From positions 124,001 through 188,000 of the IMG/VR virus record IMGVR_UViG_3300005613_000002: DNA of 64,000 nt. One strand, written 5' to 3'. Made by a program: the position numbers and the translations under genes. The notes beneath the pieces are model-generated. The model searched no databases and had not been told where the DNA came from. It was given only the letters and a program-made list of their open reading frames with translations. Shown piece by piece: positions 2,557 through 29,731 of this stretch (positions are counted from its first letter, which is position 1; every line of letters begins with the position of its first letter).

Positions 2557-2599
2557 TTTGCATTTAATGTAACATTTTATACCTTTGTACCGTATTTAG
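2557..2599 (+). promoter_or_regulatory. Composite promoter of tRNA operon 1 (Bacteroidetes TTTG-N19-TAnnTTTG overlapping TGTAAC-N17-CGTA)
   Basis: TTTG 2557-2560, TACCTTTG 2580-2587, TGTAAC 2568-2573, CGTA 2591-2594; near-identical to 22438-22480. Confidence 0.65.
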
Positions 2600-2649: not shown

Positions 2650-2766
2650 ATGATGAAAAACTTGATGAACATATTAGCAATTGTAGTGATGTTGGATGCT
2701 GTCCTATTATGGGATGATGCGGAAGAATTATGTAATGTCGGGTTTAAATCTAAAACAGGTGTATAA
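2650..2766 (+). CDS. Leader peptide 1 (MMKNLMNILAIVVMLDAVLLWDDAEELCNVGFKSKTGV), putative attenuator
   Basis: 38-codon ORF between promoter and terminator; contains TCGGGTTT (2738-2745), complementary to the terminator 5' arm. Confidence 0.8.
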   Translation: MMKNLMNILAIVVMLDAVLLWDDAEELCNVGFKSKTGV

Positions 2767-2786
2767 ATAATACCTATAAGATAAAT

Positions 2787-2821
2787 AAAAAACCCGATTT
2801 AGAAATGAATCGGGTTTTTTT
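2787..2821 (+). terminator. Attenuator terminator 1
   Basis: AAAAAACCCGATT / AATCGGGTTTTTTT hairpin with U-tract. Confidence 0.85.
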
Positions 2822-2859
2822 GTGTTTAAAATTGTTGTTCTTTGAAATGTTGGGAATTT

Positions 2860-2936
2860 AGTGCGTTAGTTCAGTTGGTTAGAATATCGGTCTGTCACAC
2901 CGAAGGTCGTGGGTTCGAGTCCCATACGCACTGCCA
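2860..2936 (+). tRNA. tRNA-Asp(GTC)
   Basis: Cloverleaf, anticodon loop CT-GTC-AC, encoded CCA. Confidence 0.9.
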
Positions 2937-2950
2937 AAGGTTAGTAATAT

Positions 2951-3049
2951 TGACGATTAACCATCTGATGTATGATGTTTCCTTAATGAAATTGAAAGGT
3001 GGACGCTCTTGTGGTGAGAAGTGGTCTCTATGATAAAGTAATTGAAAAC
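2951..3049 (+). repeat. ~100-nt repeat copy 1 (putative ncRNA)
   Basis: Near-identical to 3450-3548. Confidence 0.8.
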
Positions 3050-3056
3050 AAATTAT

Positions 3057-3128
3057 CGACTGCGTAGTATAATGGCTAGTATGTCGCACTGTCTATGCGA
3101 AGGAGGGGTTCGAATCCCACGTGGTCGG
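3057..3128 (+). tRNA. tRNA-Asp(GTC), possible 8/4 fold
   Basis: TCGCA-CT-GTC-TA-TGCGA arm, GGTTCGAATCC T arm. Confidence 0.8.
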
Positions 3129-3360
3129 CTGGAGGTCGTTTTTTGTACCTTTTACTGTTATTGCAGTAAAAAGTACTATATAATGGTACAATACTGTGAT
3201 TTTGATAGTATTTTACTGTTATTGCAGTAAAAATAACAAGATATAGTGCATTATAATGTGATTTGTCTGGATATTCCAGAAGTAAACGCATTATTTTACA
3301 CAAATATTGATTAAAGGTGCAAGATAATGCACTTTACGTCTGGAGATTCCAGATAATAAT

Positions 3361-3431
3361 GGCGCATTCGTCTAGTGGCAGGACATAAGACCTTCAATCT
3401 TATCGCAGGGGTTCGATTCCCCTATGCGCTA
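3361..3431 (+). tRNA. tRNA-Glu(TTC)
   Basis: TAAGA-CC-TTC-AA-TCTTA anticodon arm. Confidence 0.85.
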
Positions 3432-3449
3432 CTAGAGGTTAGCAGCAAT

Positions 3450-3548
3450 GACGATTAACCATCTGATTTGTGAGGTTTCCTTGATGAAATTGAAAGGTGG
3501 ACGCTCTTGTGGTGAGAAGTGGTCTCCATGATTGAGTAATTGAAAACA
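3450..3548 (+). repeat. ~100-nt repeat copy 2 (putative ncRNA)
   Basis: Near-identical to 2951-3049. Confidence 0.8.
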
Positions 3549-3553
3549 TAAAT

Positions 3554-3628
3554 GGCACGGTAGACCAATTGGCAGAGTCATCAGATTTAAATCCTGTAAT
3601 AGTGTGGGTTCGATTCCCATTCGTGCTA
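3554..3628 (+). tRNA. tRNA-Leu(TAA), short variable loop
   Basis: Cloverleaf, loop TT-TAA-AT; lacks the long variable arm. Confidence 0.7.
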
Positions 3629-3630
3629 CG

Positions 3631-3716
3631 ATTAAATTGCAATTAATTCTTAACAGGTTCGATTCCTGCTCGTCATGATTAATTACTTGATGGGATGGTG
3701 TAATGTGGTATAACAC
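3631..3716 (+). ncRNA. Circularly permuted tRNA-like element
   Basis: Order is anticodon arm, T arm (CAGG-TTCGATT-CCTG), 3' acceptor CTCGTCA, linker, 5' acceptor TGATGGG, D arm GTGT..ACAC. Confidence 0.5.
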
Positions 3717-3721
3717 AAAAT

Positions 3722-3793
3722 GTTCGGGTCTTCTAACGGCTAGGAAGCAGGGTTTTCATCCCTGTAATCGGGGTTCGATTCCCCGTCCGAATA
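3722..3793 (+). tRNA. tRNA-Glu(TTC)
   Basis: CAGGG-TT-TTC-AT-CCCTG arm. Confidence 0.9.
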
Positions 3794-3969
3794 CAAAGTA
3801 GATTAATAATCTGTCGTAGGTTCTACATGGGTGCGCACCCTACTACGACACCATTTTACCAATTAATTTAGGTGATTAACCTAATAAAATAATACATTAA
3901 CTATTATTTAATATTTAAAATAGGTTTTATAACATGTTTTACCCTATTTATCATTTCAAATTAAATTAT

Positions 3970-4143
3970 ATGAAAAAAATGAAAAGAATTTTAATAGGAA
4001 TTTTACTTACATTAATTGTTATTATGTGTATGGGAATGTTTATAACTTCAATTAATAATTATGAAAATGATGATTCATTAATTGAGATAGAAAAACCTTT
4101 AATGGTTGAAGATTGGATGTTAGATGAAAACTACTTTAATTAA
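3970..4143 (+). CDS. Small protein with N-terminal signal or TM segment
   Basis: MKKMKRILIGILLTLIVIM hydrophobic N-terminus. Confidence 0.5.
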   Translation: MKKMKRILIGILLTLIVIMCMGMFITSINNYENDDSLIEIEKPLMVEDWMLDENYFN

Positions 4144-4247
4144 ATTAGTAGTTTTGGGATTCAATTTCATACGAAGACAAAATGTGGATTATTTTCCACT
4201 TTGTTAAATATTTTCAACAAAGTTTGAGTATTTATAATAAAAAGAAA

Positions 4248-4775
4248 ATGAAAAAATGTTTAATTTATGGTTTATATTGTCCTTTTTTAGATGAACCACA
4301 TTATATTGGGAAAAGTAGTACATCAATGGTTAGACCATTATCACATTTAAATAAATCACATTCTAATGAAATAAATGAATGGGTGAGACAATTAAAATTT
4401 TTAGGTTATAAACCAATTATTAAAATTCTTGAAGAATGTAATATTAATAATGTTGATGAAAAAGAATTATTTTGGATTAAAAAAATATCTAATAATGGTT
4501 ATTATTTATTAAATAAATCACATAATAAAATTGATTTTATTTTAAATAAAAAGGAATATAAATTCAATGATGACGATATTTTAAATGTTGCGGATATGAT
4601 TAAACAAAAAAGAAAAGAATTAAATTACACTCAACTAGATGTCTCAAATTTATGTGGAATCAATAGAAGTACATATATTGAAATTGAAAAAGGCAGTAAA
4701 AAAACTACGTATGGTAATTTAAAAAAAGTTTTAAATGTTTTAGGTTATAAAATAAAAATTGAAAAAAATGAATAG
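4248..4775 (+). CDS. GIY-YIG endonuclease fused to an XRE HTH domain
   Basis: LIYGL..YIGKS..R motif; C-terminal KQKRKELNYTQLDVSNLCGINRSTYIEIEKG; start refined to the ATG after GTATTTAT. Confidence 0.75.
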   Translation: MKKCLIYGLYCPFLDEPHYIGKSSTSMVRPLSHLNKSHSNEINEWVRQLKFLGYKPIIKILEECNINNVDEKELFWIKKISNNGYYLLNKSHNKIDFILNKKEYKFNDDDILNVADMIKQKRKELNYTQLDVSNLCGINRSTYIEIEKGSKKTTYGNLKKVLNVLGYKIKIEKNE

Positions 4776-5073
4776 AATAATTTTATTACCTAAAATTATT
4801 TCTAAATTAGAAATAATGGGTGAAAATATTAAATTAGCAAGATTACGAAGAAAGTTATCTGTTGAACAAGTTTGTGAAAGAGCAAACATATTAAATGAAA
4901 CATTAGTTAATATAGAAAATGGTTCTCCAAATGTTTTATTTGGTCATTATGTTTCAGTGCTTATTACACTTAATCTTGTTAATGATATATATAATATTGC
5001 TAATGATGATATATTAGGTAGAAAATTACAAGATATTGAATTATTAAATAATTCCAAAAATTCACCAAATTAG
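4768..5073 (+). CDS. XRE-family HTH protein (HipB-like)
   Basis: GENIKLARLRRKLSVEQVCERA...DDILGRKLQD resembles HipA-associated XRE regulators. Confidence 0.7.
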   Translation: MNRIILLPKIISKLEIMGENIKLARLRRKLSVEQVCERANILNETLVNIENGSPNVLFGHYVSVLITLNLVNDIYNIANDDILGRKLQDIELLNNSKNSPN

Positions 5074-5093
5074 GAGATTTCTGGCAAATTTTT

Positions 5094-5167
5094 GCTCCCT
5101 TAATTCAGTGGTTCAGAAATCCTGTTTTACAAGCAGGAAGTCGCTGGTTCGAATCCAGCAGGGAGCA
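5094..5167 (+). tRNA. tRNA-Val(TAC)
   Basis: CCTGT-TT-TAC-AA-GCAGG arm. Confidence 0.9.
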
Positions 5168-5416
5168 CAATTATTGGTAAATAAACCGATAAAGTATATT
5201 TATTGGTAAATAAACCGATAAACATCATCATTGATTCATAGGATTTAGTATATTTGTTATATGAATATAGGGATTCCATATGAATTAATTAAAATCTACA
5301 ATAATGATGGTATTGACTTGATGATATATCAACCAATAAGATTTATAGATTCATTTGATTATAGTTATCATCATGATTTTTATACTGTTGATAGATTTAT
5401 TTATCGAGCATTTTAA

Positions 5417-5497
5417 CCTCAAGTGGTGGAACAGGTAGACACGTATGCCTAAGAAGCATATGCCATTGGCGTGTGGGTTCGACTCCCACCTTGAGGA
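5417..5497 (+). tRNA. tRNA-Leu(AAG)
   Basis: TATGC-CT-AAG-AA-GCATA arm; Leu-type D loop and long variable arm. Confidence 0.8.
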
Positions 5498-5503
5498 CAA
5501 TAT

Positions 5504-5584
5504 GCGGAAGTGACATTAAAGCGAATGGTAGAGTGACTAGCCTTAGAAGCTAGGGTTTTGTGGGTTCGACTCCCACCTTCCGTA
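5504..5584 (+). tRNA. tRNA-Leu(TAG), short variable loop
   Basis: CTAGC-CT-TAG-AA-GCTAG arm; enlarged D loop. Confidence 0.75.
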
Positions 5585-5602
5585 CAAAAATTAATAAAAA
5601 AT

Positions 5603-5628
5603 TGTAACAATTTAAATATATTTACGTA
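5603..5628 (+). promoter_or_regulatory. ECF-type promoter TGTAAC-N16-CGTA
   Basis: One of 12 copies in the window. Confidence 0.65.
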
Positions 5629-5751
5629 TATTTAAAAAAATTGTCGAAATGCGAGTGAATGTTATTTTTCTTATTTAGCTATATAGATAAATAAATAGTA
5701 CCAGCAGTAGCCATTGATGTACAGGTGGTGTGTAGTAAAGTAAACAATTAT

Positions 5752-5825
5752 GGGGCAGTAGCTTAGATGGATAAAGCATCTGATTTGCATTCAGAAGACC
5801 GTGGGTTCGAGTCCCATCTGCTCCA
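5752..5825 (+). tRNA. tRNA-Ala(TGC)
   Basis: TCTGA-TT-TGC-AT-TCAGA arm; G3:U70. Confidence 0.9.
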
Positions 5826-5983
5826 CAAAAAGAGGATTACTAGGATAAGCTATGGCAGTGACCTTATTGTAATGAGTAAAAAACATAAGGTAGTTACCCT
5901 TAATATCCTTCCTCTTTTACCTAATTATCATCGGAAGGTGATATTCGCATCAGAATAAAGTTCGAACATAAAACTGATGTGTT

Positions 5984-6056
5984 TCCGACATAGCGCAGTT
6001 GGTTAGCGTACTCCCGTTAGAGGGAGGGGTCACTGGTTCGAGTCCAGTTGTCGGTA
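5984..6056 (+). tRNA. Atypical tRNA with 6-nt anticodon loop (GTTAGA), identity uncertain
   Basis: Good acceptor, D and T arms; CTCCC/GGGAG stem closes only 6 nt. Confidence 0.6.
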
Positions 6057-6171
6057 CAGGAGGGGTAGTTTATAAGGATTCCTATTGATACGGATGAAAA
6101 CTCAACATGGTGACGTTAGTAGAATGAATGAAACCAGTAGTAAATCTACATACGCTATAAAACTAACAAAT

Positions 6172-6243
6172 GGGGCATTAGCTCAGTGGCTAGAGTACTA
6201 CGCTTGCACCGTAGAGACAAGAGTTCGATTCTCTTATGCTCCA
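6172..6243 (+). tRNA. tRNA-Ala(TGC)
   Basis: CTACG-CT-TGC-AC-CGTAG arm; G3:U70. Confidence 0.9.
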
Positions 6244-6382
6244 CTAATCCATGAAATAAGGCAGGTAATATGAAATCCTGTGATAATAGGGTAACGTGTC
6301 TGTCAATGTTGAGAGATAAAACAGGTATTCCCTGTCACGTCCTATTATCGATTACATAAGTATTTATGTTAAATATAAATTT

Positions 6383-6865
6383 ATGGATTATTTACTTATT
6401 TTATTTATCATTTTAGTTACTATTTTTGTAACATATATTTCAACAATTATTTTAAAGTATGGTGTATTACCATCAGTTTCTGATAGTTATTATCATTTAC
6501 CCAAAAAATATAATTTTTTATTTACATTATTTTGTTGGAGTTTCGCTATACCTACATTAATTATTGGTGTTGAATTAACTGATAATTTTTTAATGTTTCT
6601 TGCTGGTGCTGGTATTTGTTTTGTAGGTGCTGCTGCACAATTTAAAGAAGAATTAACAAAACAAGTACATACATATAGTGCATGGGTTGGTGTAATAAGT
6701 AGTCAATTATCAATTATATTTGATTTTAAAATGTATTATGTATCAATACTTTTTTTATTACCATCATTATTATTAATGATATTAAAACCAAAAAATTATA
6801 CATTTTGGATTGAAATAATTGCATTTTCATTAATTTGTTATGTTTTAGGTGTTAATATATTATAA
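6383..6865 (+). CDS. Multi-pass membrane protein
   Basis: About five hydrophobic segments; SVSDSYY motif. Confidence 0.6.
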   Translation: MDYLLILFIILVTIFVTYISTIILKYGVLPSVSDSYYHLPKKYNFLFTLFCWSFAIPTLIIGVELTDNFLMFLAGAGICFVGAAAQFKEELTKQVHTYSAWVGVISSQLSIIFDFKMYYVSILFLLPSLLLMILKPKNYTFWIEIIAFSLICYVLGVNIL

Positions 6866-6866
6866 T

Positions 6867-6949
6867 ACGCAAGTTGCCGAGTGGTTAAAGGCGATGGTCT
6901 CCAAAACCATTCTCGAAAGAGTTCGTGGGTTCGAATCCTACCTTGCGTG
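6867..6949 (+). tRNA. tRNA-Trp(CCA) with long variable arm
   Basis: ATGGT-CT-CCA-AA-ACCAT arm; CTC-GAAA-GAG variable arm; G73. Confidence 0.8.
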
Positions 6950-7050
6950 CAAAAATTACCTGATATTACCAGATAGAAATAACTAACTGTTTAATATCAG
7001 GTAGTTACCATTTATTCTATTGCCAGATATTGCCAGATAGTAGAATTATT

Positions 7051-7076
7051 TGTAACATTTATTTGTTTTATGCGTA
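7051..7076 (+). promoter_or_regulatory. ECF-type promoter TGTAAC-N16-CGTA
   Basis: Motif copy upstream of the 7106 ORF. Confidence 0.65.
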
Positions 7077-7105
7077 TATTATAGTAAATTTGAAAAAAAT
7101 TAAAC

Positions 7106-7834
7106 ATGTATATTATTTCGAAAAATAAAGACTATTATGATGGTGTTGCTGGCTCAACAGGAATTGATAAAACAATTGTTTATGAGAGATATCCTGTTGA
7201 AATTGATAATCAAATCAAAATGCCTAAAATATTTCATCATAAAAATACTTGGCAATATAGATATGATAATCAATTTTTAAATATTAGATATTCTGAACTT
7301 GATTCGAAGAAATCGAAAAAATATAATAATGTACATAGTTTTATTGTTGGATTTTGTGGAAAACTTTATTTAGGTTGGAAATTTCATTATACAGTAAAAG
7401 CTGATAGATTAGGTTTGGAGAAAATTAAAACTGATATTGTTTATGGTTATGATAATGCGAAAAAATATCTTAGAGAAAAACACTGGAAACATAATTTAGA
7501 AGATGATGTTAACTTCATTAAAAGTTATGACCCAATTAATATTTTTAGAGAAATTAATGCCCCTGTTTTCATTTATGATAATGAATCAAATTTAAATTTT
7601 AGTAATAATGGACAGTTACTTAATTATGGATTATTAATAATTAATCCATTATTAAAAGACTATGAATTTTATAAAGTAGTAGATACTTTTCAAGCATTTC
7701 AAGAAATTCAAATGTTTTTGGGCGGTGTGTTAGGTAGAGGTGAAAAAGAGATTATTCAAGTAGCTGATAAATATAAAATTGAACAACACGGTTTTGATAA
7801 ATGGAGTTTTAGAAAAGAACCAAAAAGCAAATAA
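7106..7834 (+). CDS. Hypothetical phage protein
   Basis: 242 aa ORF; KDYYDG, VGFCGK and HGFDK motifs. Confidence 0.6.
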   Translation: MYIISKNKDYYDGVAGSTGIDKTIVYERYPVEIDNQIKMPKIFHHKNTWQYRYDNQFLNIRYSELDSKKSKKYNNVHSFIVGFCGKLYLGWKFHYTVKADRLGLEKIKTDIVYGYDNAKKYLREKHWKHNLEDDVNFIKSYDPINIFREINAPVFIYDNESNLNFSNNGQLLNYGLLIINPLLKDYEFYKVVDTFQAFQEIQMFLGGVLGRGEKEIIQVADKYKIEQHGFDKWSFRKEPKSK

Positions 7835-8006
7835 AATGGAAATATTAATCAAATTAGATGAAGTATTGGAAAAATGTAATGATTGGGAATCATTTTGTAA
7901 AAAAAGAGGTTATTCCGAATATTGTGTTAATGAAGGTGGTGGTGATATTGAAATATTTCTCTCAGAGAATGATGCAAAAGAATTTGGAATAATAAAAAAA
8001 TAAATT

Positions 8007-8366
8007 GGGGCAGCACGGTTTTGACAGCGTGTATGAGTGATAATGTAAGCAAGTAGTAGTTGAATTAATCTACTTTAAAAGGATTCAAAACTATAAATGT
8101 AGAAGACATTATGTCTATCCAAACTTCTGTAACAAGAGGTGAAAGCGTATTTGCAAGAAATACTGAACTTGCAATTGCAGCATAGGAAACAAGAAAACAG
8201 TAGAACCATCTGATGATGTTACGATTTGTGTGATTACGTTAACACCTTAGATGAAAAACTCCACAGCAATCATACTATTTTTGGAAGGTTAGAAAACTTT
8301 ATCCTAAACTTGTAGAAATCTTATTAATCACATGTTTGGACAGGGGTTCGATTCCCCTCTGCTCCA
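8007..8366 (+). ncRNA. ssrA: tmRNA
   Basis: 5' GGGGCAG..TTTGAC and 3' GGGGTTCGATTCCCCTCTGCTCCA tRNA-like domain; tag frame 8099-8185 ending ELAIAA-TAG. Confidence 0.9.
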
Positions 8367-8544
8367 CTAAAATAATTATTATGAGTAATAAAAAAATTAA
8401 TAACATTAAAGAAAGTCTTGAATATCTTAAAAAGAATAAAACAGTTTCAACAAAACAACTATTTGATGATATTGAGACTGAAACAATTTATGATTTAAAA
8501 GCAATGGGATATATTGGTTTTGGTAAAAATAAACATTAAGGTAT

Positions 8545-8629
8545 GCCGAAGTGGTGGAATTGGTAGACACGCCAGATTTAAGCTCTGGTGAGCATTATGC
8601 TCGTGTGGGTTCGAGTCCCATCTTCGGTA
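8545..8629 (+). tRNA. tRNA-Leu(TAA)
   Basis: CCAGA-TT-TAA-GC-TCTGG arm; long variable arm. Confidence 0.9.
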
Positions 8630-8905
8630 CAAAATTTAATAAAAATGAAAGCATACGGATTAAATAAAAAATTTAGGTTTAATTATCCAGATAATCATCC
8701 ACCAAAAGGATGGGTTAATTGGTGGGAAACAGAAATGGGTAGTGTTAATAAAGGGAGAGCCAGACAAGAAGCTAAACGTAATTTAAGAAAGGAGATTAAT
8801 GGTGAAAACGACTAAAAAAGATAATGATTGTGGTTGTGGTAAACCATTAAAAATTAATGACAAAAGAAAGAAGAAGTTTATTAAAAAGAAAAAGAGAAAA
8901 AATAT

Positions 8906-8986
8906 GCTCAAGTGATGTAACGGTAGCCATGCTTGTTTCAAAAGCAAGTGTCTAATGACGTGTGGGTTCGATTCCCACCTTGAGTA
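8906..8986 (+). tRNA. tRNA-Leu(CAA)
   Basis: CTTGT-TT-CAA-AA-GCAAG arm; long variable arm. Confidence 0.85.
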
Positions 8987-9330
8987 CAAATAATTGAAAA
9001 GATGAATAATGAAGAAATTGAACAATTAAAGAGAATGGTTGATAGTTATATTTATAATTTAACTAAAACACCAAATACAGCTAATCCTAAAGAAATTGAA
9101 CTTGCAAATTTAGTAAGAAATAAAATAAATCAGACTAATTTCAATAAAAAACCAGTTGAACAAAAACCTACTTGCACATATAGAAATCATTTTTCTGATA
9201 TTGAGGATTATGGTAGATGTAGAAAATGTAGGGCAGGATTTAGCTTTATATAATAATTAAAACTATTTATAAATGATGAAAACAAATAAAGAAAGGGTAT
9301 CAGTTTTCTAAGTATAAAAACTTAGAAAAT

Positions 9331-9624
9331 ATGAAAGCAAAAAGAATTATTGATGAAACCACAAATCGTGGTGATTTTAATCGTGCATATAAAAGTTATT
9401 TAGCACAGACAGGGAAAATTCGTTGTGGTTATTGTAAATATAATCGTAGTTGTAATAATCCTAGTCATTATGGTGGTTATGAGGATGATAAAAATGGTTT
9501 AAGATATCCTAGTTGGAAATTAGTTTCAAAAAATAGAAAACAATGGATGGAAAAACCGTTAAAGAAAACAACCAGAACAATTATGAGAAATAGTTCTGAT
9601 TATATCACTTTCAAATGGAAGTGA
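9331..9624 (+). CDS. Small basic hypothetical protein with CxxC motif
   Basis: 97 aa ORF. Confidence 0.5.
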   Translation: MKAKRIIDETTNRGDFNRAYKSYLAQTGKIRCGYCKYNRSCNNPSHYGGYEDDKNGLRYPSWKLVSKNRKQWMEKPLKKTTRTIMRNSSDYITFKWK

Positions 9625-9629
9625 TTTAT

Positions 9630-9702
9630 GGCGAGTTAGCTCAATCGGTAGAGCGTTGGCTTCATAAACCAAAGGCAGAGGGTTCAAATCCCTCACTCGC
9701 TA
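9630..9702 (+). tRNA. tRNA-Met(CAT), elongator-like
   Basis: TT-CAT-AA loop, GGCGAGT acceptor. Confidence 0.8.
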
Positions 9703-9717
9703 CAATTAATCCCAACA

Positions 9718-11767: not shown

Positions 11768-12856
11768 ATGAAAATACTAGAAAAAATAGATTGGAGTGTC
11801 TTAGACACATATATTGAAAATAATTTAATTGTTTCAAACAAACATCCAGATTATGATATTTGGATATTAAATTATTCACCAAAAACACAATATAATCAAT
11901 TATGGGATGAATATACTTTATCTTGTCGTGGACTTATTATTGATGCAGAAGGTAATATATTAGGTAGACCATTTCAAAAATTTAAAAATTTCGAAGAATA
12001 TGACCCATCAGAAATTGATATGTCAAAAAAATATGAAATCTTTGAAAAAATGGATGGTTCGTTAATTATTTTATTTTATTACTCTGTGACTAATGAATGG
12101 ATTGTTGCAAGTAGAGGCTCATTCATATCTGAACAATCAGATGAAGCAAGAAAAATGCTTAATAAAATTGACAATATTTTTAGTAAATTAAGTAATAATT
12201 TCACATACATATTTGAAATATTATATGCTGAAAATAGAATAGTCGTTAACTATGGAAATAGATGGGAACTAGTAATGTTAAGTTGTATCGACACTGTTAC
12301 TGGTATTGAATTGAAACATAAAAATTTAGTTGGTGGATATTCTGATTATTTTTCAATTGTGAAAAAATATGATCTAAAAGTTAATGATTTATTTGAACTT
12401 AAAAAACTTGATGAAAATAATAGAGAAGGTTTTGTGATTAGGTTTGAGGATGGTTTTAGAATTAAAGTTAAATTTGAAGAATATGTGAGATTACACGGTA
12501 TTCTTACAAATGTGTCTAATGTTACAGTTTGGGAACACTTAATGAATAAATATGATTTTGAATTATTATCAGATAGAGTTCCAGATGAAATGTATACTTG
12601 GTTAAATAAAACTATAAGTAAATTACAAATAGAATATAATGAAATTGAAAGATTAGCACTAAAAGAATTTGTGAGAATTTATCATATAAATAATATTACA
12701 ACTCGTAAAGAATTTGCAATGGAAGCATTGAAAAGTAAATATCGTTCAATATTATTTAATGTGTTTGATAGAAAATCTTATGATATCATCATATGGAAAA
12801 TGATAAAACCAATTCGTAGCACACCATTTAGAGATGGTTATGAATATATTGCTTAA
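11768..12856 (+). CDS. T4 Rnl1-like RNA ligase
   Basis: CRGLI, KFKN, EKMDGS (motif I), FE, NRIVV, EGFV, KVK. Confidence 0.85.
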   Translation: MKILEKIDWSVLDTYIENNLIVSNKHPDYDIWILNYSPKTQYNQLWDEYTLSCRGLIIDAEGNILGRPFQKFKNFEEYDPSEIDMSKKYEIFEKMDGSLIILFYYSVTNEWIVASRGSFISEQSDEARKMLNKIDNIFSKLSNNFTYIFEILYAENRIVVNYGNRWELVMLSCIDTVTGIELKHKNLVGGYSDYFSIVKKYDLKVNDLFELKKLDENNREGFVIRFEDGFRIKVKFEEYVRLHGILTNVSNVTVWEHLMNKYDFELLSDRVPDEMYTWLNKTISKLQIEYNEIERLALKEFVRIYHINNITTRKEFAMEALKSKYRSILFNVFDRKSYDIIIWKMIKPIRSTPFRDGYEYIA

Positions 12857-13003
12857 ATATAATTAACTGAAAAACAATAAGATATAAATTAATTTAATGG
12901 TTTTTAAAAAAAGATTAAAATTTTGTTGTTTGTTACGTATTTATGACATATATTTGTACCTCAATTTAGAGAATAGAAAACAACAATTATTAAATACAAA
13001 AAA

Positions 13004-13084
13004 ATGAAAACTAATAAAACATATTACGGTTATAAATCATATAAGAAAAATCTTATTGATATCGGGATTGTTTTGTTAAATTGA
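13004..13084 (+). CDS. Leader peptide 2 (MKTNKTYYGYKSYKKNLIDIGIVLLN), putative attenuator
   Basis: 26-codon Tyr/Lys-rich ORF; ATCGGG (13061-13066) complementary to terminator CCCGAT; TATATTTG and GTATTTAT motifs upstream. Confidence 0.8.
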   Translation: MKTNKTYYGYKSYKKNLIDIGIVLLN

Positions 13085-13119
13085 TAACAAAGTATAAACA
13101 ATGATTTTATATAAACATT

Positions 13120-13150
13120 GAGACCCGATTCGAAAGATTCGGGTCTTTTT
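13120..13150 (+). terminator. Attenuator terminator 2
   Basis: AGACCCGA / TCGGGTCT hairpin with U-tract. Confidence 0.85.
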
Positions 13151-13365
13151 GTTTTATAGTAAATTGTGAAAATATTGAAAGTTATTTGAAATTGTGATAG
13201 AAAATTTAAATGAAAAATTATTAAATGAATTTGTGTAACATACGCAATCGTGAGATAAAAAAACAAGAACAGTGGAAGGTGCTGACAGGCATTGATTCGG
13301 GAAATAATTTAGTAGGTTGGGTAAGTATAAAACAAAAGTAAAATAATGAGTAGACATACTAATAG

Positions 13366-13450
13366 ACATTTGTAGCTCAGTTGGTAGAGCAAGGGAACAC
13401 GTTTGCGTATCTTTAATCCCTGTGCGTAGGTTCGAATCCTACTGAATGTA
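13366..13450 (+). tRNA. tRNA-Lys-like gene with 20-nt expanded anticodon loop
   Basis: AGGGA/TCCCT stem encloses ACACGTTTGCGTATCTTTAA. Confidence 0.6.
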
Positions 13451-13471: not shown

Positions 13472-13552
13472 GGATAGGTAGGTAAGTGGTTAAAACGGGT
13501 GGACTGTAAATCCATTGCTTCGGCTTCGGGGGTTCGAATCCCTCTCTATCCA
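13472..13552 (+). tRNA. tRNA-Tyr(GTA)
   Basis: GTGGA-CT-GTA-AA-TCCAT arm; long variable arm. Confidence 0.9.
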
Positions 13553-13586
13553 CAACAGGTTACTAAATAATAGTAACATTAATGAT

Positions 13587-13661
13587 ACACCTGTAGCTCA
13601 GATGGCAGGTAGCTACGCCCTTTTAAGGCGAAGGTCATGGGTTCGAGTCCCATCAGGTGTA
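13587..13661 (+). tRNA. tRNA-Lys(TTT)
   Basis: CGCC-CT-TTT-AA-GGCG arm. Confidence 0.85.
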
Positions 13662-13788
13662 CTTCGAGATATTTTGCAGTTTTTGACTCTTTCAATAAAA
13701 ACTGAGAATAGTGGACAAGGTACGAAAGGAATTTCCAAATGTCAGAGATAATTTCAATGACGTGAACTAACCAATAATGTTCACAAAC

Positions 13789-13872
13789 GGGTAGGTATGC
13801 AAATTGGTGAAGCAAGCGGTCTGTAAAACCGTGACGTAAGAGACAATGGCGGTTCGAGTCCGTCCCTGCCCA
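13789..13872 (+). tRNA. tRNA-Tyr(GTA)
   Basis: GCGGT-CT-GTA-AA-ACCGT arm; long variable arm. Confidence 0.9.
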
Positions 13873-13901
13873 CATTACTAAAAAATAGTAATAATAGGCA
13901 T

Positions 13902-13976
13902 TCCCCTATAGCTCAGTTGGTTTAGAGCACCTCACTTTTAATGAGGGAGTCCTCGGTTCGAGTCCGAGTGGGGGAA
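13902..13976 (+). tRNA. tRNA-Lys(TTT)
   Basis: CCTCA-CT-TTT-AA-TGAGG arm. Confidence 0.9.
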
Positions 13977-14058
13977 CTAAATATTTTAATTTTCCTTGCA
14001 ATTATAATTATTTTTTGTTATTTTTAATTAAAATAATTCTATATAAGTATTAATAAAT

Positions 14059-22437: not shown

Positions 22438-22480
22438 TTTGGAGTTAATGTAACATTTTATACCTTTGTAACGTATTTAT
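22438..22480 (+). promoter_or_regulatory. Composite promoter of tRNA operon 3
   Basis: TTTG-N19-TACCTTTG, TGTAAC-N17-CGTA and GTATTTAT overlap. Confidence 0.65.
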
Positions 22481-22531
22481 GAACTCAAGGCAGTAAGCCA
22501 GTAAGATTTTAACAATAAAAAATAGATTATT

Positions 22532-22669
22532 ATGAGAAATTCAGTTATTAATATTAATATCACTTCGGGAACGACTATTAGTCGCAATGGGAATGGTATA
22601 TTCTGTTCAATTTTTGGCAGAAATATTACACATGACGAGTCTTTAATAATGGAAGAAGATAGAGGATAA
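22532..22669 (+). CDS. Leader peptide 3 (MRNSVININITSGTTISRNGNGIFCSIFGRNITHDESLIMEEDRG), putative attenuator
   Basis: 45-codon ORF; CGAGTCTTT (22636-22644) complementary to terminator AAAGACTCG (22695-22703). Confidence 0.8.
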   Translation: MRNSVININITSGTTISRNGNGIFCSIFGRNITHDESLIMEEDRG

Positions 22670-22691
22670 AAAACTCTAACTAAACGAAATT

Positions 22692-22726
22692 AAAAAAGAC
22701 TCGATATTAATCGGGTCTTTTTTTTT
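22692..22726 (+). terminator. Attenuator terminator 3
   Basis: AAAAAAGACTCGAT / ATCGGGTCTTTTTT hairpin with U-tract. Confidence 0.85.
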
Positions 22727-22750
22727 GTTCATTGACGTGTTGGTAAATTT

Positions 22751-22833
22751 GTCGGGATGCCTGAGTGGTTGAAAGGGGCGGTCTGCAAAACCGTTTGCGA
22801 AAGCACACGTGGGTTCGAATCCCACTCCCGACT
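22751..22833 (+). tRNA. tRNA-Cys(GCA) with long variable arm
   Basis: GCGGT-CT-GCA-AA-ACCGT arm; TGC-GAAA-GCA variable arm; U73. Confidence 0.8.
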
Positions 22834-22896
22834 CATTGTAATAATTTGCAATAAACTACAAAATGTGGTATTTATCGCAAATTAATATTCAAATAT

Positions 22897-22970
22897 TGTC
22901 TTGTAGCTCAGTTGGTTAGAGCATCTCTCTGATACGGAGAAGGTCGTGGGTTCGAGTCTCACTAAGACAA
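22897..22970 (+). tRNA. tRNA-Ile(GAT)
   Basis: TCTCT-CT-GAT-AC-GGAGA arm. Confidence 0.88.
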
Positions 22971-22979
22971 CAACAATAT

Positions 22980-23053
22980 TGTCTCGTAGTTCGGTCTGGT
23001 AGAGCGTCACCCTGATAAGGTGGGAGTCGTGGGTTCAAATCCCACCGAGACAA
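22980..23053 (+). tRNA. tRNA-Ile(GAT)
   Basis: TCACC-CT-GAT-AA-GGTGG arm. Confidence 0.88.
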
Positions 23054-23108
23054 CAACTCTTGACGAAGATTTTGCATTGGTTTTTCAAACCAGCACGTAT
23101 TTATTAAT

Positions 23109-23447
23109 ATGAAAAAACGTGGTGGTCATAAAATTGGAATTGAAGGATTGTTAAAAGCAGCCGATAAAAAAAGAATGACGAATGAAGAATGTTTTATTGA
23201 AAATTCAACATATCCTCGTCATAGATTAAAAGAAAGAATAATTAAACAAAATTTAATTGAATATCGTTGTAAAATTTGTGATAATAATGGAATGTGGATG
23301 AATAAACCAATGCCATTAATATTAGACCATAAAAATGGTATTAATAATGATAATAGAATAGATAACCTTAGATTTGTTTGTAGTAATTGTGATTCTCAAT
23401 TACCAACATATAAAAATCGAAGGGGAAACATAAAAATGGAAGATTAG
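23109..23447 (+). CDS. HNH homing endonuclease
   Basis: CKIC..LDHKNGINNDNRIDNLRFVCSNC. Confidence 0.85.
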   Translation: MKKRGGHKIGIEGLLKAADKKRMTNEECFIENSTYPRHRLKERIIKQNLIEYRCKICDNNGMWMNKPMPLILDHKNGINNDNRIDNLRFVCSNCDSQLPTYKNRRGNIKMED

Positions 23448-23526
23448 CCTAATTGGTAAGGCAGCAGTCTTGAAAACTGCCGTGTCATGTAAAAGTGGCT
23501 TGTGGGTTCGAGTCCCACATCTTCCT
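23438..23526 (+). tRNA. tRNA-Ser(TGA)
   Basis: GCAGT-CT-TGA-AA-ACTGC arm; long variable arm. Confidence 0.88.
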
Positions 23527-23531
23527 CATTT

Positions 23532-23604
23532 TGACCTTAATACGGGAACATGAAGATTCTGTGTCATGACACTTCTTCGGGAGGTTCGAAACCTTCAAGG
23601 TCAG
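23532..23604 (+). ncRNA. Degenerate tRNA-like element
   Basis: TGACCTT/AAGGTCA acceptor and GGAGG-TTCGAAA-CCTTC T arm; no canonical D or anticodon arm. Confidence 0.45.
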
Positions 23605-23845
23605 CTAAGTTGAATGAAATGGATAAAATCATTTAACTTATACATCAAATGAAAGTCATGAAGTTATTTGATGTGAAAGTTCTGGGTGCATAAGACGCTG
23701 CTTTAACATTCAGTAGAATTATTTTGTGGACGTATTTGGCAGTACGGATATACACAACTTAAAACTCCGAGATGTTACGAATTAATGGTTGGAATACCAT
23801 CGGAGATCGTGAGTAGGAGGCTCACACCAGAACTATTTTTAATTT

Positions 23846-23931
23846 GGCTTGGTTGCTTTAGTGGTCGAAAAGTCTGGACTGTTAATCCAGTGAACTATGT
23901 TCCATCGTGGGTTCGAATCCCACCCTTGCCT
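23846..23931 (+). tRNA. tRNA-Asn(GTT) with long variable arm
   Basis: CTGGA-CT-GTT-AA-TCCAG arm; two U-U mismatches in the acceptor stem. Confidence 0.7.
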
Positions 23932-23942
23932 CAACACAAATT

Positions 23943-24014
23943 GCTCCGATAGCTCAGTGGTAGAGCAGAAAGCTGTTAACTTTAAGGTCGTAGGTTCAAT
24001 CCCTACTCGGAGCG
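23943..24014 (+). tRNA. tRNA-Asn(GTT)
   Basis: AAAG-CT-GTT-AA-CTTT arm; G73. Confidence 0.88.
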
Positions 24015-24064
24015 CAAGGGACGTAGAAAGGAGAATACGTCTTTAAATAAAGTCCTTTCATTAT

Positions 24065-24137
24065 GGAGTAATTACCAAGTTGGTCAAGGTGCTGGCGTGA
24101 AGTCCCAGAAATGTGGGTTCGATTCCCACTTACTCCA
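24065..24137 (+). tRNA. tRNA-Phe(GAA), atypical loop
   Basis: Loop GT-GAA-GT; normal acceptor and T arms. Confidence 0.7.
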
Positions 24138-24143
24138 CATAAT

Positions 24144-24271
24144 GGTGTTATAGCTCAGTTGGTCAGAGCGTTGAGTGATAACTCAAGTCAGAAATTAAAT
24201 ACGAATTGGTTAAGGTTAAAACGAAAATTCTACTGATTTAATTTGCATTGGTTCAAATCCAGTTAACACCA
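24144..24271 (+). tRNA. tRNA-Ile(GAT)-like gene with ~55-nt insertion in the variable region
   Basis: GGTGTTA/TAACACC acceptor, TTGAG-TGATAA-CTCAA arm, T arm displaced to ~24247. Confidence 0.6.
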
Positions 24272-24486
24272 CTTGAGCGTGATAAACAATATTTTACAAA
24301 ATGACGATAATGCATCAATGTTGTTATTTTATGGGTGTGATTCCCATGCTTAAACGAAATTAAAATCTGGTCACACAGGTGTTTGTCCTAACCAGAAAAA
24401 CATGACCTCTTTAGCAGGTGGTATCTTAGTTTGGGCAACTAAGAGTGTGAAAATATTTATTAGTATTTATAAGAAAATTACACATA

Positions 24487-24912
24487 ATGAAAATATTAAT
24501 AATGGGATTACCTACTTCAGGTAAAACATGGTTTGCTGAAAGATTACAAAATGAAATTGGTTGTGCATGGTATAATGCTGATGCTGTTAGAACAATGGCT
24601 AATGATTGGGATTTTAGTGTTGAAGGTCGTAACAGACAAGCACTGAGAATGAAAACATTTGCTGATTTTGAAAATAATAATGATAGAATTGTTGCTTGTG
24701 ATTTTGTCTGTCCTACACCAGAAACTAGATTATTATTTAAACCTGATTTAATTATTTGGATTAACACTATTGATAAATCAAAATATCAAGATACTAATAA
24801 AGTTTTTATTAAACCAAATGATTCAGAAGGTTTTAAATTAATTGAAATCACAAAAAAAGTTATACTTGAAGATATAATTGAATTAGCAAATAAACATATA
24901 ACAACAAGTTGA
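24487..24912 (+). CDS. Adenylylsulfate-kinase-like P-loop kinase
   Basis: GLPTSGKT, NADAVR, DWDFSVEGR, DFVCP. Confidence 0.75.
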   Translation: MKILIMGLPTSGKTWFAERLQNEIGCAWYNADAVRTMANDWDFSVEGRNRQALRMKTFADFENNNDRIVACDFVCPTPETRLLFKPDLIIWINTIDKSKYQDTNKVFIKPNDSEGFKLIEITKKVILEDIIELANKHITTS

Positions 24913-25068
24913 GAATGTAATGCAGCGATGTATTACCAACAAACATTAATTTTATAACCTCTGGGAACTGGCATGTTATAGATGTAAGAATGCTACACTG
25001 AAACAAGACGCTAAAAGCCAGTATATAGCCAAGTAGGGTAGTTTGGAGTGATAATGTCTCAACAAAAT

Positions 25069-25142
25069 GGTGCGGTAGCTGAGTTGGTTCAAGCGTTGGA
25101 CTGAAAATCCAAAGTAGGTGGGTTCAATTCCCACACGTACCA
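25069..25142 (+). tRNA. tRNA-Phe(GAA)
   Basis: TTGGA-CT-GAA-AA-TCCAA arm. Confidence 0.88.
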
Positions 25143-25206
25143 CAATTTTATTTTCATTAAATGAAAATCTTTTGTCATTATCATAGTATTTATGTGAAAA
25201 ATATTA

Positions 25207-25682
25207 TGGAAATACAAATAAAAAAATTATTAAATGAAGGTAAAAGTATGTCTGAAATTGGTATAATATTGGATAGGCATAGAACTACTATTAGTAAAAT
25301 AGTTAAAGCAAATGGATGGAAACGTGAAATAGTTAAAAATATTAATTGTGTTGTTTGTAATGAAAATTTAGGGATAAATAAAAAAAATAATACTAAATGT
25401 ATGACATGTGTTACTAAATTAAGACGTTTACGTTTAAAAATTAAATGTGTTGAATATTTAGGTGGTAAATGTGTTAATTGTGGATTTGATAAACATTTAG
25501 CAGCATTACAATTTCATCATAGAAATAGTAATAATAAGGATTTTCTAATTAGTTCAATAAATACTAAATCTTGGAAACTTATAATTGAAGAATTAAATAA
25601 ATGTGATTTACTATGTGCAAATTGTCATGCAGTTAAACATTCAACAAATTATGATGATGAAAATTTAAGAAAATTCTTATAA
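25207..25682 (+). CDS. HNH endonuclease with N-terminal HTH
   Basis: GGKCVNCG..LQFHH..KCDLLCANCH; start refined to the ATG after GTATTTAT. Confidence 0.8.
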
Positions 25683-25766
25683 ATAATACATTTAATGGTC
25701 ACTCGAATGTTAGACCTCCTGTAATTACAGGTGAATCCAAGAGGTTCAGTAAAAAGTCGAGGCTTT

Positions 25767-25838
25767 GCAGGTGTAGCACAATGGCTAGTGCGTGACCCTT
25801 CCAAGGTCGGGATGACGGTTCGATTCCGTTCACCTGCT
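25767..25838 (+). tRNA. tRNA-Gly(TCC)
   Basis: TGACC-CT-TCC-AA-GGTCG arm. Confidence 0.9.
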
Positions 25839-25887
25839 CCTTTGGTCGTTTTTTGTACTTCTCAGTATTTATGAGAAAGTACAAATT

Positions 25888-26523
25888 ATGGCTAGAAAAG
25901 AAAAAAAATATCATTTCATATATAAAACAACTAATGTTGTTACTAATAGATATTATTATGGAATGCATAGTACCGATAATTTAGATGATAATTATTTAGG
26001 TAGTGGTAGGAGATTAAAATACTCAATTAATAAACATGGTAAAGAAAACCATGAAAGAGAAATTGTTGAATTTTGTCAAGACCGAAGTTCATTGAAAAAA
26101 CGTGAAAGTGAATTAGTTAATCTTAATGAGATTGCTAAAAAAGATTGTATGAATCTAATGGTTGGTGGGACTGGTGGTTTTGTTTCTAAAGAAGCAGCAA
26201 GAAAAGGTGCTAAAGCACTGAAGATTAAATATGGTGATGAATATAAAAATAAATTGATAGAATGGGGTGCTAAAGGTGGACAATCAACATCGGATAAACA
26301 TGGTTCACCATTTAATAATATTATGAATAGATGTAATTGGACTAATAAAAGTCATACCGAAAAAACTAAAAGAAAAATGAGTGAGTCAAGTAAAGGTATC
26401 GGTATTGGAAATAATAATTCACAATTCGGTACTTGTTGGATTACAAATGAAAAAGATAATAGAAAAATAAATAAAGAAGACTTAATCCCAGAAGGATGGA
26501 GATTAGGAAGAAAAATAATATAA
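25888..26523 (+). CDS. GIY-YIG (Seg-like) homing endonuclease with NUMOD3 repeat
   Basis: FIYKTTN..YYYGMH..YLGSG; HTEKTKRKMS. Confidence 0.85.
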   Translation: MARKEKKYHFIYKTTNVVTNRYYYGMHSTDNLDDNYLGSGRRLKYSINKHGKENHEREIVEFCQDRSSLKKRESELVNLNEIAKKDCMNLMVGGTGGFVSKEAARKGAKALKIKYGDEYKNKLIEWGAKGGQSTSDKHGSPFNNIMNRCNWTNKSHTEKTKRKMSESSKGIGIGNNNSQFGTCWITNEKDNRKINKEDLIPEGWRLGRKII

Positions 26524-26570
26524 GGTCTGAGGGAGTCCTTTAAAGGTATAAATAACCTGTCCCTCTCCAC

Positions 26571-26643
26571 GCCACCCATAGCTTAATTGGCTAAAGCAGG
26601 GCACTTGTAATGCTCAGATGCGGTTCGAGTCCGATGGGTGGCT
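26571..26643 (+). tRNA. tRNA-Thr(TGT), possible 8/4 fold
   Basis: GGGCA-CT-TGT-AA-TGCTC arm; 8-bp GCCACCCA/TGGGTGGC acceptor. Confidence 0.8.
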
Positions 26644-26793
26644 CAATTTTTTGGTTTATTGCACTGGATTTTTCATGTTTAAACGTATTCATTAACTAAA
26701 TATAACAAAGGCAATAATAAAGGTAACGGTAGAAATAGAAAATAATTTCATTAGATACATCAATTACTTAATATTTTTTCATATCTTTACAAT

Positions 26794-26988
26794 ATGAAAT
26801 ACATTCATATAAAAACAGGCAAAATCTATCATGTTCTTTCATTTGATGTCACTAATGCAACAAATGCACAAGATGGTCAACAAATGGTGCATTATTATGG
26901 TGAAAAAAAAGATGGTAGTGGAAATAGTTATTTTGTTAGAGAAATTAGTGAATTTGAATTAAAATTCACAAAATATCATAAATTATGA
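26794..26988 (+). CDS. DUF1653-like small protein
   Basis: YIHIKTGKIY...VHY...FVREISEF..KF. Confidence 0.6.
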   Translation: MKYIHIKTGKIYHVLSFDVTNATNAQDGQQMVHYYGEKKDGSGNSYFVREISEFELKFTKYHKL

Positions 26989-27027
26989 AAAAAGGATACA
27001 ATTAATAATGTAAATTAACTATTATAA

Positions 27028-27102
27028 TGACCCGTAGCTCAGTTGGTTAGTAGCAGTTCCCTCATAAGGAAAAGGTCGGGGGTTCGAGTCCCTTCGGGTC
27101 AA
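27028..27102 (+). tRNA. tRNA(CAT), probably Ile2 (lysidine type)
   Basis: CT-CAT-AA loop; acceptor resembles the Ile(GAT) tRNAs of the same cluster. Confidence 0.75.
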
Positions 27103-27232
27103 CTTTTGGTCTTATAAACGACCACAAAAATAAAAGGGTTGGAAAAACGAAATTGATTACTGCAATATGATAGATTAGTTTTATGCCCACCACATAAGTT
27201 TGATTTTGCTGATGATAATGAAAAAGTGGTTA

Positions 27233-27303
27233 TACTTGTTAGTACAATGGATAGTGCACCCTTTCGAAAGAGGGTTATATTGGTTCGAATCCAATGCAGG
27301 TAC
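27233..27303 (+). tRNA. Degenerate tRNA-Arg(TCG)-like gene
   Basis: Acceptor, D and T arms present; irregular anticodon stem around TTTCGAA. Confidence 0.5.
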
Positions 27304-27575
27304 AATATTTTAATTATTCTCAAGGACAATATCTAGGACATAATGTACTTGAGAATAATTAAAAATTATAAGATACATGTTAAGGAACAATTGGGTTCTT
27401 TAGTGTTATGAAAATTAATATTTGTTAACCTAATTTATTAGGTGGTGATAGACAAGCCATACGGATTTACTGCTTGAAATATAGCATATCGCAAATAAGT
27501 GTTCAACTGAAGGTGGGTCATGCGCATAACAATTTGACCGTAGATTACTCAGTAGCTGACAAATATAATTTTTAT

Positions 27576-27649
27576 GCCAACATAGCTTTAATTGGTAGAG
27601 CACAACACTTGTAATGTTGGGGTTGGGGGTTCGAATCCCTCTGCTGGCT
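27576..27649 (+). tRNA. tRNA-Thr(TGT)
   Basis: CAACA-CT-TGT-AA-TGTTG arm. Confidence 0.88.
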
Positions 27650-27675
27650 CAGAATAATTAATAAAAATTGAAAAA

Positions 27676-28074
27676 ATGGTATTGCAAGAAAAAATTAAAA
27701 AAGAAATGCTTTCTGCTATGAAAGCAAAGGAAACTGAAAAATTAAGTTTTTTGAGAGTTCTTAGTGGTGAATTAAGTACAAATAATAAAAGAACTGGAAA
27801 AGAAAAATTAGATGAATTACAAATTATTCGTAAAATGTCTAATAACGCTAAAGAATTAGGTAACTTAGTTGAAGTAGAAATGCTTAGTGAATATCTACCA
27901 AAGATGCTTGAACCAAAAGAAATTAAAGTTATTGTTAAGAATATCATTGATGTAAATGGTTATTCAACAATGAAAGAAATGGGTCAGATAATGGGGAAAA
28001 TTAAGCAATGTAAAGAAAGTACAAAAATTGATATGAAATCAGCTAATATTTTTATTAGAGAATTATTAACATAA
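27676..28074 (+). CDS. GatB/YqeY domain protein
   Basis: LQEKIKKEMLSAMKAK..LR; YLPKML; MKEMGQIMG. Confidence 0.85.
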   Translation: MVLQEKIKKEMLSAMKAKETEKLSFLRVLSGELSTNNKRTGKEKLDELQIIRKMSNNAKELGNLVEVEMLSEYLPKMLEPKEIKVIVKNIIDVNGYSTMKEMGQIMGKIKQCKESTKIDMKSANIFIRELLT

Positions 28075-28246
28075 TAAACAAAATGAATTATACAATAACC
28101 TTAATGAAAAATAAATTAACATTTGAAAACGAGAAAAGAAAATAGGTTTCATTGAATGGTTATGCCTTTATTGATGATTGGGGTCATTGTATGATTATTG
28201 TTTATGGTGAAAATAATAGAGATAAATATATTGAACATTTAAATAT

Positions 28247-28320
28247 GCACCCGTAGCTCAAATGGATAGAGCATCAGATTTCTAATCTGTGGGTCGGGGG
28301 TTCGAATCCCTTCGGGTGTA
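28247..28320 (+). tRNA. tRNA-Arg(TCT)
   Basis: CAGA-TT-TCT-AA-TCTG arm. Confidence 0.9.
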
Positions 28321-28328
28321 CTAAAAAT

Positions 28329-28405
28329 ATCTGTGTAGCTCAATTGGATAGAGCATTTCCCTGCGAAGGAAAAGGTTGTGTGTTCGAATCACATCACAGA
28401 TACCA
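28329..28405 (+). tRNA. tRNA-Arg(GCG)
   Basis: TTTCC-CT-GCG-AA-GGAAA arm; encoded CCA. Confidence 0.85.
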
Positions 28406-28467
28406 ATATTTATAGTTCAAATGTCGAATATTTATTATTTTTTTCGTAAATTGAACTATTTAATAAT

Positions 28468-29725: not shown

Positions 29726-29731
29726 TTAAAT

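Follow-up and report, generated by a model that had tools for sequence, protein, structure and literature searches.

We identified, upstream of a tRNA gene array in a giant Bacteroidota phage, an arrangement of sequence elements that resembles a trp-style attenuator, in which a short reading frame whose codons match the tRNA genes behind it is followed by a terminator with a conserved alternative pairing. This arrangement supports, by computation only, the interpretation that a ribosome-mediated (leader-peptide) transcription attenuator would allow the phage to switch on a block of its own tRNA genes when decoding of those codons slows. The element, designated unit A, lies at 2557-2853 of the 64-kb stretch of DNA analyzed here (hereafter the window), which derives from IMG/VR contig UViG_3300005613_000002 (321,624 bp). 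The window has 27% G+C and carries about 40 tRNA genes and a tmRNA, all on the + strand. Neither megablast nor blastn against 50,697 phage records revealed anything beyond tRNA genes, and no close relative exists among these cultured phages. The elements of unit A, and of two additional units of the same design within the window, are as follows.

2557-2587 (+): promoter of Bacteroidota type for unit A, consisting of TTTG (2557-2560), a 19-nt spacer and TACCTTTG (2580-2587), with a predicted transcription start near 2594
2653-2766 (+): leader ORF of unit A, with further in-frame ATGs at 2650 and 2635 and a TAA stop at 2764-2766
2658-2673 (+): segment 1, proposed anti-antiterminator, predicted to pair with 2729-2745 when the RNA is not being translated
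2683-2730 (+): sixteen consecutive sensor codons for Val, Met, Leu, Asp, Ala, Trp and Glu
2737-2745 (+): segment 2, proposed antiterminator, which copies the terminator 3' arm and pairs with 2790-2798
2787-2821 (+): segments 3 and 4, an intrinsic terminator with 5' arm 2787-2801, 3' arm 2806-2820 and then a T run
2837-2853 (+): boxA-like 17-mer between the terminator and the first tRNA
2860-9703 (+): proposed regulated block A, with tRNAs Asp x2, Glu x2, Leu(taa) x2, Val, Leu(aag), Leu(uag), Ala x2, Trp, Leu(caa), Met, one odd tRNA and a tmRNA, interspersed with small ORFs
12949-13151 (+): unit B, with a -7 box (12949-12956), a Tyr/Lys-rich leader ORF (13004-13084), an antiterminator (13061-13066) and a terminator (13121-13146) plus T run, followed by tRNAs Tyr, Lys, Tyr, Lys at 13472-13977
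22438-22743 (+): unit C, with a promoter (22438-22468), a leader ORF (22532-22669), an antiterminator (22636-22644), a terminator (22695-22720) plus T run and a boxA-like element (22727-22743), followed by tRNAs Cys, Ile, Ser, Asn, Phe, Gly, Thr, Met and Arg at 22751-29807

We first examined the sequence features on which the original prediction of an attenuator was based, and these were all confirmed. The ORF 2650-2766 contains, at codons 12-27 (2683-2730), the residues VVMLDAVLLWDDAEEL, all of which are Val, Met, Leu, Asp, Ala, Trp or Glu, and ARAGORN and Rfam placed tRNAs for exactly these seven amino acids, plus a tmRNA, between 2860 and 9703. The ORF has 38 codons, and the ATG at 2653 aligns with the start in homologues. 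The original prediction also held that the Leu codons TTG, TTA and CTA are matched by tRNAs of the block. Indeed, TTG matches the CAA tRNA at 8906, TTA matches the TAA tRNAs at 3554 and 8545, and CTA matches a tRNA with a UAG anticodon and an enlarged D region at 5504-5584, which was missed by ARAGORN and by the whole-window Rfam scan but scored 33.8 bits in a small Rfam search. TCGGGTTT (2738-2745) is the reverse complement of AAACCCGA (2790-2797), and the hairpin 2787-2820 with its T run (15 pairs, 4 G-C) is the strongest terminator-like site in the first 14.5 kb. The seven-residue set makes up 34.6% of residues in long ORFs, and a run of 16 is the longest in all six frames of the window, where the next longest is 12; under independence, about 0.0035 such runs would be expected in the whole window. 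The same segment was the top-scoring one for this residue set in a six-frame translation of 73 kb of the source contig. Although the set was defined after looking at the tRNAs, it was not freely chosen, as it is the content of a natural block bounded by a minus-strand gene and 3.6 kb of protein genes. The original prediction further proposed that a ribosome running to the stop would mask the antiterminator; in this window that holds only loosely, since the stop codon lies 19 nt past TCGGGTTT and a ribosome sitting exactly at the stop would not cover the segment, which is instead covered during decoding of about codons 27-35.

We next asked whether the arrangement recurs. In unit B, nine of the first 14 leader residues are Tyr or Lys, and in unit C, 36 of 44 residues of a 45-codon leader come from {C,I,S,N,F,G,T,M,R}; in each case a terminator follows and then tRNAs for the corresponding amino acids. 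A fourth unit was found about 1.5 kb upstream of the window start on the same contig, where a leader containing QHQPVQHPQ precedes a terminator and Pro, His and Gln tRNAs. Together the four sets cover all 20 amino acids. In a 4 x 4 comparison of leaders against sets, each leader was enriched only for the amino acids of its own tRNA block, by 5.0x, 1.8x, 2.3x and 1.8x (binomial p = 4e-5, 5e-4, 9.5e-3 and 8.6e-7), while every off-diagonal value was at most 1.1x. Moreover, a terminator scan of the whole window found hairpins of the CCCGA...TCGGG type only at units A, B and C.

To determine whether the leaders are conserved, we searched for relatives using neighboring proteins as queries. A 473-aa upstream protein gave too few relatives to be useful, but a 242-aa protein inside the block performed better, and in total about 25 related contigs were recovered, several of 320-360 kb, with 40-70% protein identity. 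All four leader types recur in these contigs, each in front of its own tRNA block, and one 49.5-kb contig (L002) shows all four in a row. Seven homologues of unit B and twelve of unit C were found, and the diagonal pattern of enrichment was unchanged when homologues were pooled. For the family of unit A (family A), homologous ORFs in 22 other distinct sequences brought the total to 23 distinct leaders, in which 87% of 494 core residues are in the set; Gly and Tyr are absent (about 25 expected each) and Lys occurs 9 times against 51 expected. Positions after the conserved Trp swap Asp, Ala, Val and Glu freely, changes that are chemically non-conservative but stay inside the set, as expected if selection acts on which tRNA decodes each codon rather than on a peptide structure. 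A few leader residues do fall outside the set, for example a conserved Ile and an occasional Asn, and some relatives keep Trp in the leader although ARAGORN finds no Trp tRNA in their block. We also tested whether G-ending leader codons track the presence of C34 isoacceptors such as Glu(ctc), but there was no clean association, which is expected because U34 tRNAs read both codons. The tmRNA gene inside block A (8007-8369) is kept at the same position in relatives.

The composition of the leaders also varied together with that of the arrays. In a related contig designated L034, the Pro/His/Gln block has gained an Arg(acg) tRNA, and its leader has a CGC codon among the Pro, His and Gln codons. 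Since a 17-mer is shared by units A and C (see below), we used it to retrieve unrelated phages from IMG/VR, in which the arrays are partitioned differently and the leaders match their own arrays. In one of these (L063), 17 consecutive leader residues are drawn only from P, Q, Y, T, G and K, ahead of Pro, Gln, Tyr, Thr, Gly and Lys tRNAs. In another (L143), 24 consecutive residues fall in the array's set, while the trailing Ala, Ser and Gly residues are exactly the specificities missing from the array. In a third (L091), the leader has 19 amino-acid types in 31 residues (p about 0.002 by simulation) and lacks only Pro, and its array has 19 specificities and likewise lacks only Pro. Over 12 representative units, the true leader-array pairing scored higher than every one of 200,000 random pairings (p < 5e-6).

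We then investigated the proposed RNA switch. By a single rule, a terminator was present in 36 of 37 units, and for 36 units we asked whether the stretch from the ORF start to just before the terminator contains a segment complementary to the terminator's 5' arm, compared with 500 shuffles. Thirty-two units passed at p < 0.05, and in every case the segment lies in the last part of the ORF or at its stop; for unit A the duplex has an energy of -12.9 kcal/mol (shuffle p = 0.008). The segments differ between units in step with their own arms, as in unit C of the window, which pairs with an AAAGACTCG arm, and in L013, L016, L018 and the Pro/His/Gln units, which have CCCCGTTC- or CCCCATTC-type arms. 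On the alignment of unit C homologues (family C), the percentage of paired cells and the covariation score exceeded all 500 shuffles and all slid controls. In family A, the seven core pairs (GTCGGGT with ACCCGAC) form in 10 of 10 sequences, but as they are invariant they show conservation and no covariation. This invariance is maintained even though GTC and GGG are unfavored codons at 27% G+C, and the conserved Val-Gly at the end of the leader is thus explained by the RNA. RNAalifold on 10 family-A homologues also predicted a helix between codons 5-6 and this segment, equivalent to the 1:2 pairing of classical attenuators, and the minimum-energy fold of the window's own sequence contains an equivalent (2658-2673 with 2729-2745), although the window copy is shifted in register.

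Folding with ribosome-sized masks revealed that at equilibrium the terminator always wins (-17.6 against -15.2 kcal/mol) under every mask, so this calculation does not discriminate between states and the choice must be kinetic; the model therefore depends on kinetics that could not be computed. In the nascent RNA, however, before the 3' arm emerges, the antiterminator forms with probability 0.8-0.9 and competes well even without a ribosome, and this probability drops to 0 when a ribosome covers 2738-2745 and to 0.3 when one is stalled just before it. In 6 of 10 family-A homologues the stop codon abuts the segment, so that masking by a ribosome at the stop holds literally. In the window a terminating ribosome would sit inside the would-be antiterminator loop rather than on the segment, and we infer that this would still block pairing.

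Each unit appears to have its own promoter. A TAnnTTTG box lies within 130 nt (21-112 nt) upstream of the leader ATG in 36 of 37 units, mostly with TTTG about 19 nt before it, against 9.5% of random windows. This is probably the promoter type of Bacteroidota, and it points to host polymerase and a Bacteroidota host. A 25-nt core is identical at 2565-2589 and at 22446-22470, in front of units A and C, and another promoter-like site at 36541-36572 shares TAATGTAAC with these two promoters, although no tRNA follows it. Between the terminator and the first tRNA lies a conserved 17-mer, GTTCTTTGACATGnTGG (2837-2853 and 22727-22743), the unit A copy having one mismatch to the motif shared by units A and C in relatives. 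We rejected the possibility that this 17-mer is a promoter, since its spacing to the terminator's TTTG varies from 0 to 60 nt, it lacks the TA of the -7 box and no -10-like element is conserved. In bacterial genomes the same 17-mer lies in rRNA operons. A first test for the 16S 5' end within 1.2 kb downstream was positive in only 1 of 122 genome hits, but Rfam then showed that the motif is mainly the spacer copy before 23S, lying 50-100 nt before 23S in a Flavobacteriales genome and two Pontibacter genomes (L172, L183 and L197); in another genome (L280) the motif lies 81 nt before 16S. That is where boxA, the NusB-S10 loading site, sits (PMC4807359, PMC10250234), and the core GUUCUUUG keeps the G2, C5, U6 and U8 positions reported as important in BoxA (PMC3177189). 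In the phage, however, it sits downstream of a putatively regulated terminator in a tRNA array. Some phages have a promoter, boxA and array with no leader, indicating that the attenuator is an added layer. In unit B, a conserved stretch containing CTGACAGGCATT (13250-13340 in the window, and 19440-19520 in contig L032) occupies the place where units A and C have the boxA-like motif.

Taken together, we consider a leader-peptide attenuator the likely explanation of unit A, with fairly high confidence, although there is no experimental or expression evidence that the ORF is translated or that the terminator is regulated. In this model, host RNA polymerase starts at the Bacteroidota-type promoter and a ribosome translates the 38-codon leader. 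If decoding of the Val, Met, Leu, Asp, Ala, Trp and Glu codons is fast, the ribosome would follow the polymerase over segment 2 and on to the stop, whereupon the terminator folds and transcription ends before the tRNAs. If any of those codons is decoded slowly, possibly because tRNAs are scarce, uncharged or damaged, the ribosome would stall between segments 1 and 2, leaving segment 2 free to pair with the terminator's 5' arm as that arm emerges, so that the polymerase runs through. It would next meet the boxA-like element, which probably loads Nus factors and makes it termination-resistant across the untranslated 6.8-kb array; the position after the terminator fits the model, as only polymerases that pass the attenuator would become resistant. 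Without any ribosome, segment 1 would pair with segment 2 and the terminator would form. The new tRNAs would speed up the leader and so close a negative feedback loop, with the four units partitioning the phage's tRNA set. Translation of the ORF, stalling, kinetic competition between the structures, Nus loading and the physiological signal sensed, which could be amino-acid starvation, host tRNA loss or cleavage, or simply the level of the phage's own tRNAs, are all inferred. The block boundaries are also inferred, and since the block contains ORFs and at least one promoter-like site (7062-7092), distal tRNAs may not depend only on readthrough.

Three alternatives were weighed against this model, and we regard each as unlikely. 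The ORF could be an ordinary small phage gene, for example encoding a short hydrophobic or acidic peptide, whose composition only happens to match the neighboring tRNA genes; its N-terminal half is indeed hydrophobic, and small ORFs with their own terminators are common in phage genomes. This reading is the least probable, because four different leaders each match their own block and no other, the match holds in unrelated phages with other array compositions, the pattern of substitutions fits selection on which tRNA decodes each codon rather than on a folded peptide, and the conserved Val-Gly is explained by the RNA pairing. Alternatively, the hairpin could be a constitutive terminator that insulates an array transcribed from elsewhere. 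In favor of this, the hairpin is bidirectional in form, with an A run before it and a T run after it, it is always the equilibrium structure, and some arrays lack a leader. However, no promoter-like element lies in the 38 nt between the terminator and the first tRNA, the dedicated promoter upstream of each leader would drive nothing but a terminated 230-nt RNA, and the antiterminator complementarity and the leader-array match would be left unexplained.

The remaining alternative, also improbable but somewhat less so, is that the unit is translation-dependent but senses overall translation capacity or the state of infection, or acts through a route such as Rho access or an arrest peptide. Several leaders sample almost every amino acid, as in L091, which behaves like a general sensor, and the core of family C is conserved in residue order and not only in composition. 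Nevertheless, splitting the tRNA set into four units with non-overlapping leader compositions in one genome makes little sense for a general sensor, and an intrinsic terminator with a matching antiterminator is present in nearly all units.

We compared the element with known systems. Like the leader-peptide attenuators of amino-acid biosynthetic operons in enterobacteria (trp, his, leu, thr, ilvGMEDA and pheA; PMC1183508), it has a promoter-proximal short ORF with regulatory codons and RNA segments that could form a terminator or an antiterminator according to ribosome position, and the ilvGMEDA and thr leaders likewise appear to sense more than one amino acid. The present element differs in that it is phage-borne, the genes it would regulate are tRNAs and a tmRNA rather than enzymes, seven amino acids would be sensed (and up to 19 in other phages) with mixed codons rather than runs of one codon, several units partition a whole tRNA set and a boxA-like element follows the terminator. 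The pheM leader of the pheST operon probably offers a parallel in which attenuation is applied to a component of the translation apparatus and senses the cognate charged tRNA, although that leader senses a single amino acid, is chromosomal and regulates a protein gene. T-box riboswitches also couple the state of specific tRNAs to a terminator/antiterminator choice upstream of translation-related genes, but they bind uncharged tRNA directly and need no ORF, and no T-box match was found here at the gathering threshold or at E <= 10. At gathering thresholds, Rfam found only tRNAs and the tmRNA in the window; among the known leader families (Thr, Trp, His, Leu and Phe), the best scores were Thr_leader at 24.6 bits against a cut-off of 55 and Trp_leader at 16 against 41, both driven by the terminator hairpin. 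In a literature search of incomplete coverage we found no description of such elements, and a search by sequence string returned only primer matches.

Phage tRNA arrays are usually discussed as static adaptations to codon usage or as spare parts against host tRNA nucleases. If these units work as proposed, a virus would read the decoding capacity of its host through translation itself and tune transcription of its tRNA genes by feedback, with separate channels for different groups of amino acids, which would extend a textbook mechanism to RNA genes of the translation apparatus and show that leaders can be built to sense up to 19 amino acids. The combination of promoter, mirror-composition ORF, CCCGA-type terminator and boxA also provides a simple signature for annotating regulated tRNA operons in metagenomic phages, and the leader offers a way to predict which tRNAs belong to one transcription unit. 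A broader and more tentative possibility, which we hold to be somewhat less likely than not, is that many Bacteroidota phages run a multi-channel, demand-driven tRNA supply, measuring codon family by codon family whether the infected cell can still decode and replacing only what is missing, for instance after host tRNA cleavage by anticodon nucleases or after host shut-off. A cyclic-phosphate-processing receiver-domain protein (PF20274) and a T4 Rnl1-type RNA ligase (PF09511), at 123-521 and 11768-12856, flank the tRNA blocks and are possible RNA-repair functions that make a link to tRNA damage plausible, though only by inference. With these neighbors, the system would be a regulated counter-defense module and the first case of leader-peptide attenuation controlling tRNA genes.

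The arrays themselves contained additional unusual features. A 140-nt direct repeat (87% identical; 2911-3050 and 3409-3548) fills the gaps from tRNA-Asp to tRNA-Asp and from tRNA-Glu to tRNA-Leu, and about 115 nt of it is non-tRNA sequence with no Rfam match at gathering thresholds. Four non-canonical tRNA-like genes were observed (5984-6057, 13366-13450, 24144-24271 and 27233-27303), of which one has a 6-nt anticodon loop that ARAGORN calls Stop or Leu, two have insertions in the anticodon arm (6-13 nt and 33 nt) and one has an 8-nt loop (cgaa). A suppressor tRNA with a CTA anticodon, labeled Pyl by ARAGORN, lies at 35544-35617 and suggests TAG reassignment in part of the phage genome; the three leader ORFs end in TAA or TGA. 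In relatives, mobile genes sit at the heads of arrays: in L004 (641-967) a TnpB-like ORF occupies the place where the unit A leader would be, while in L032 (610-1030), L033 (1593-2013) and L037 (1-396) HNH-type endonuclease ORFs lie directly before the first Pro tRNA. Finally, a 5.8-kb contig binned as an Anaerolinea MAG (CAYPJS010000146.1) carries a complete unit A followed by Asp and Glu tRNAs, and is probably a mis-binned phage fragment.
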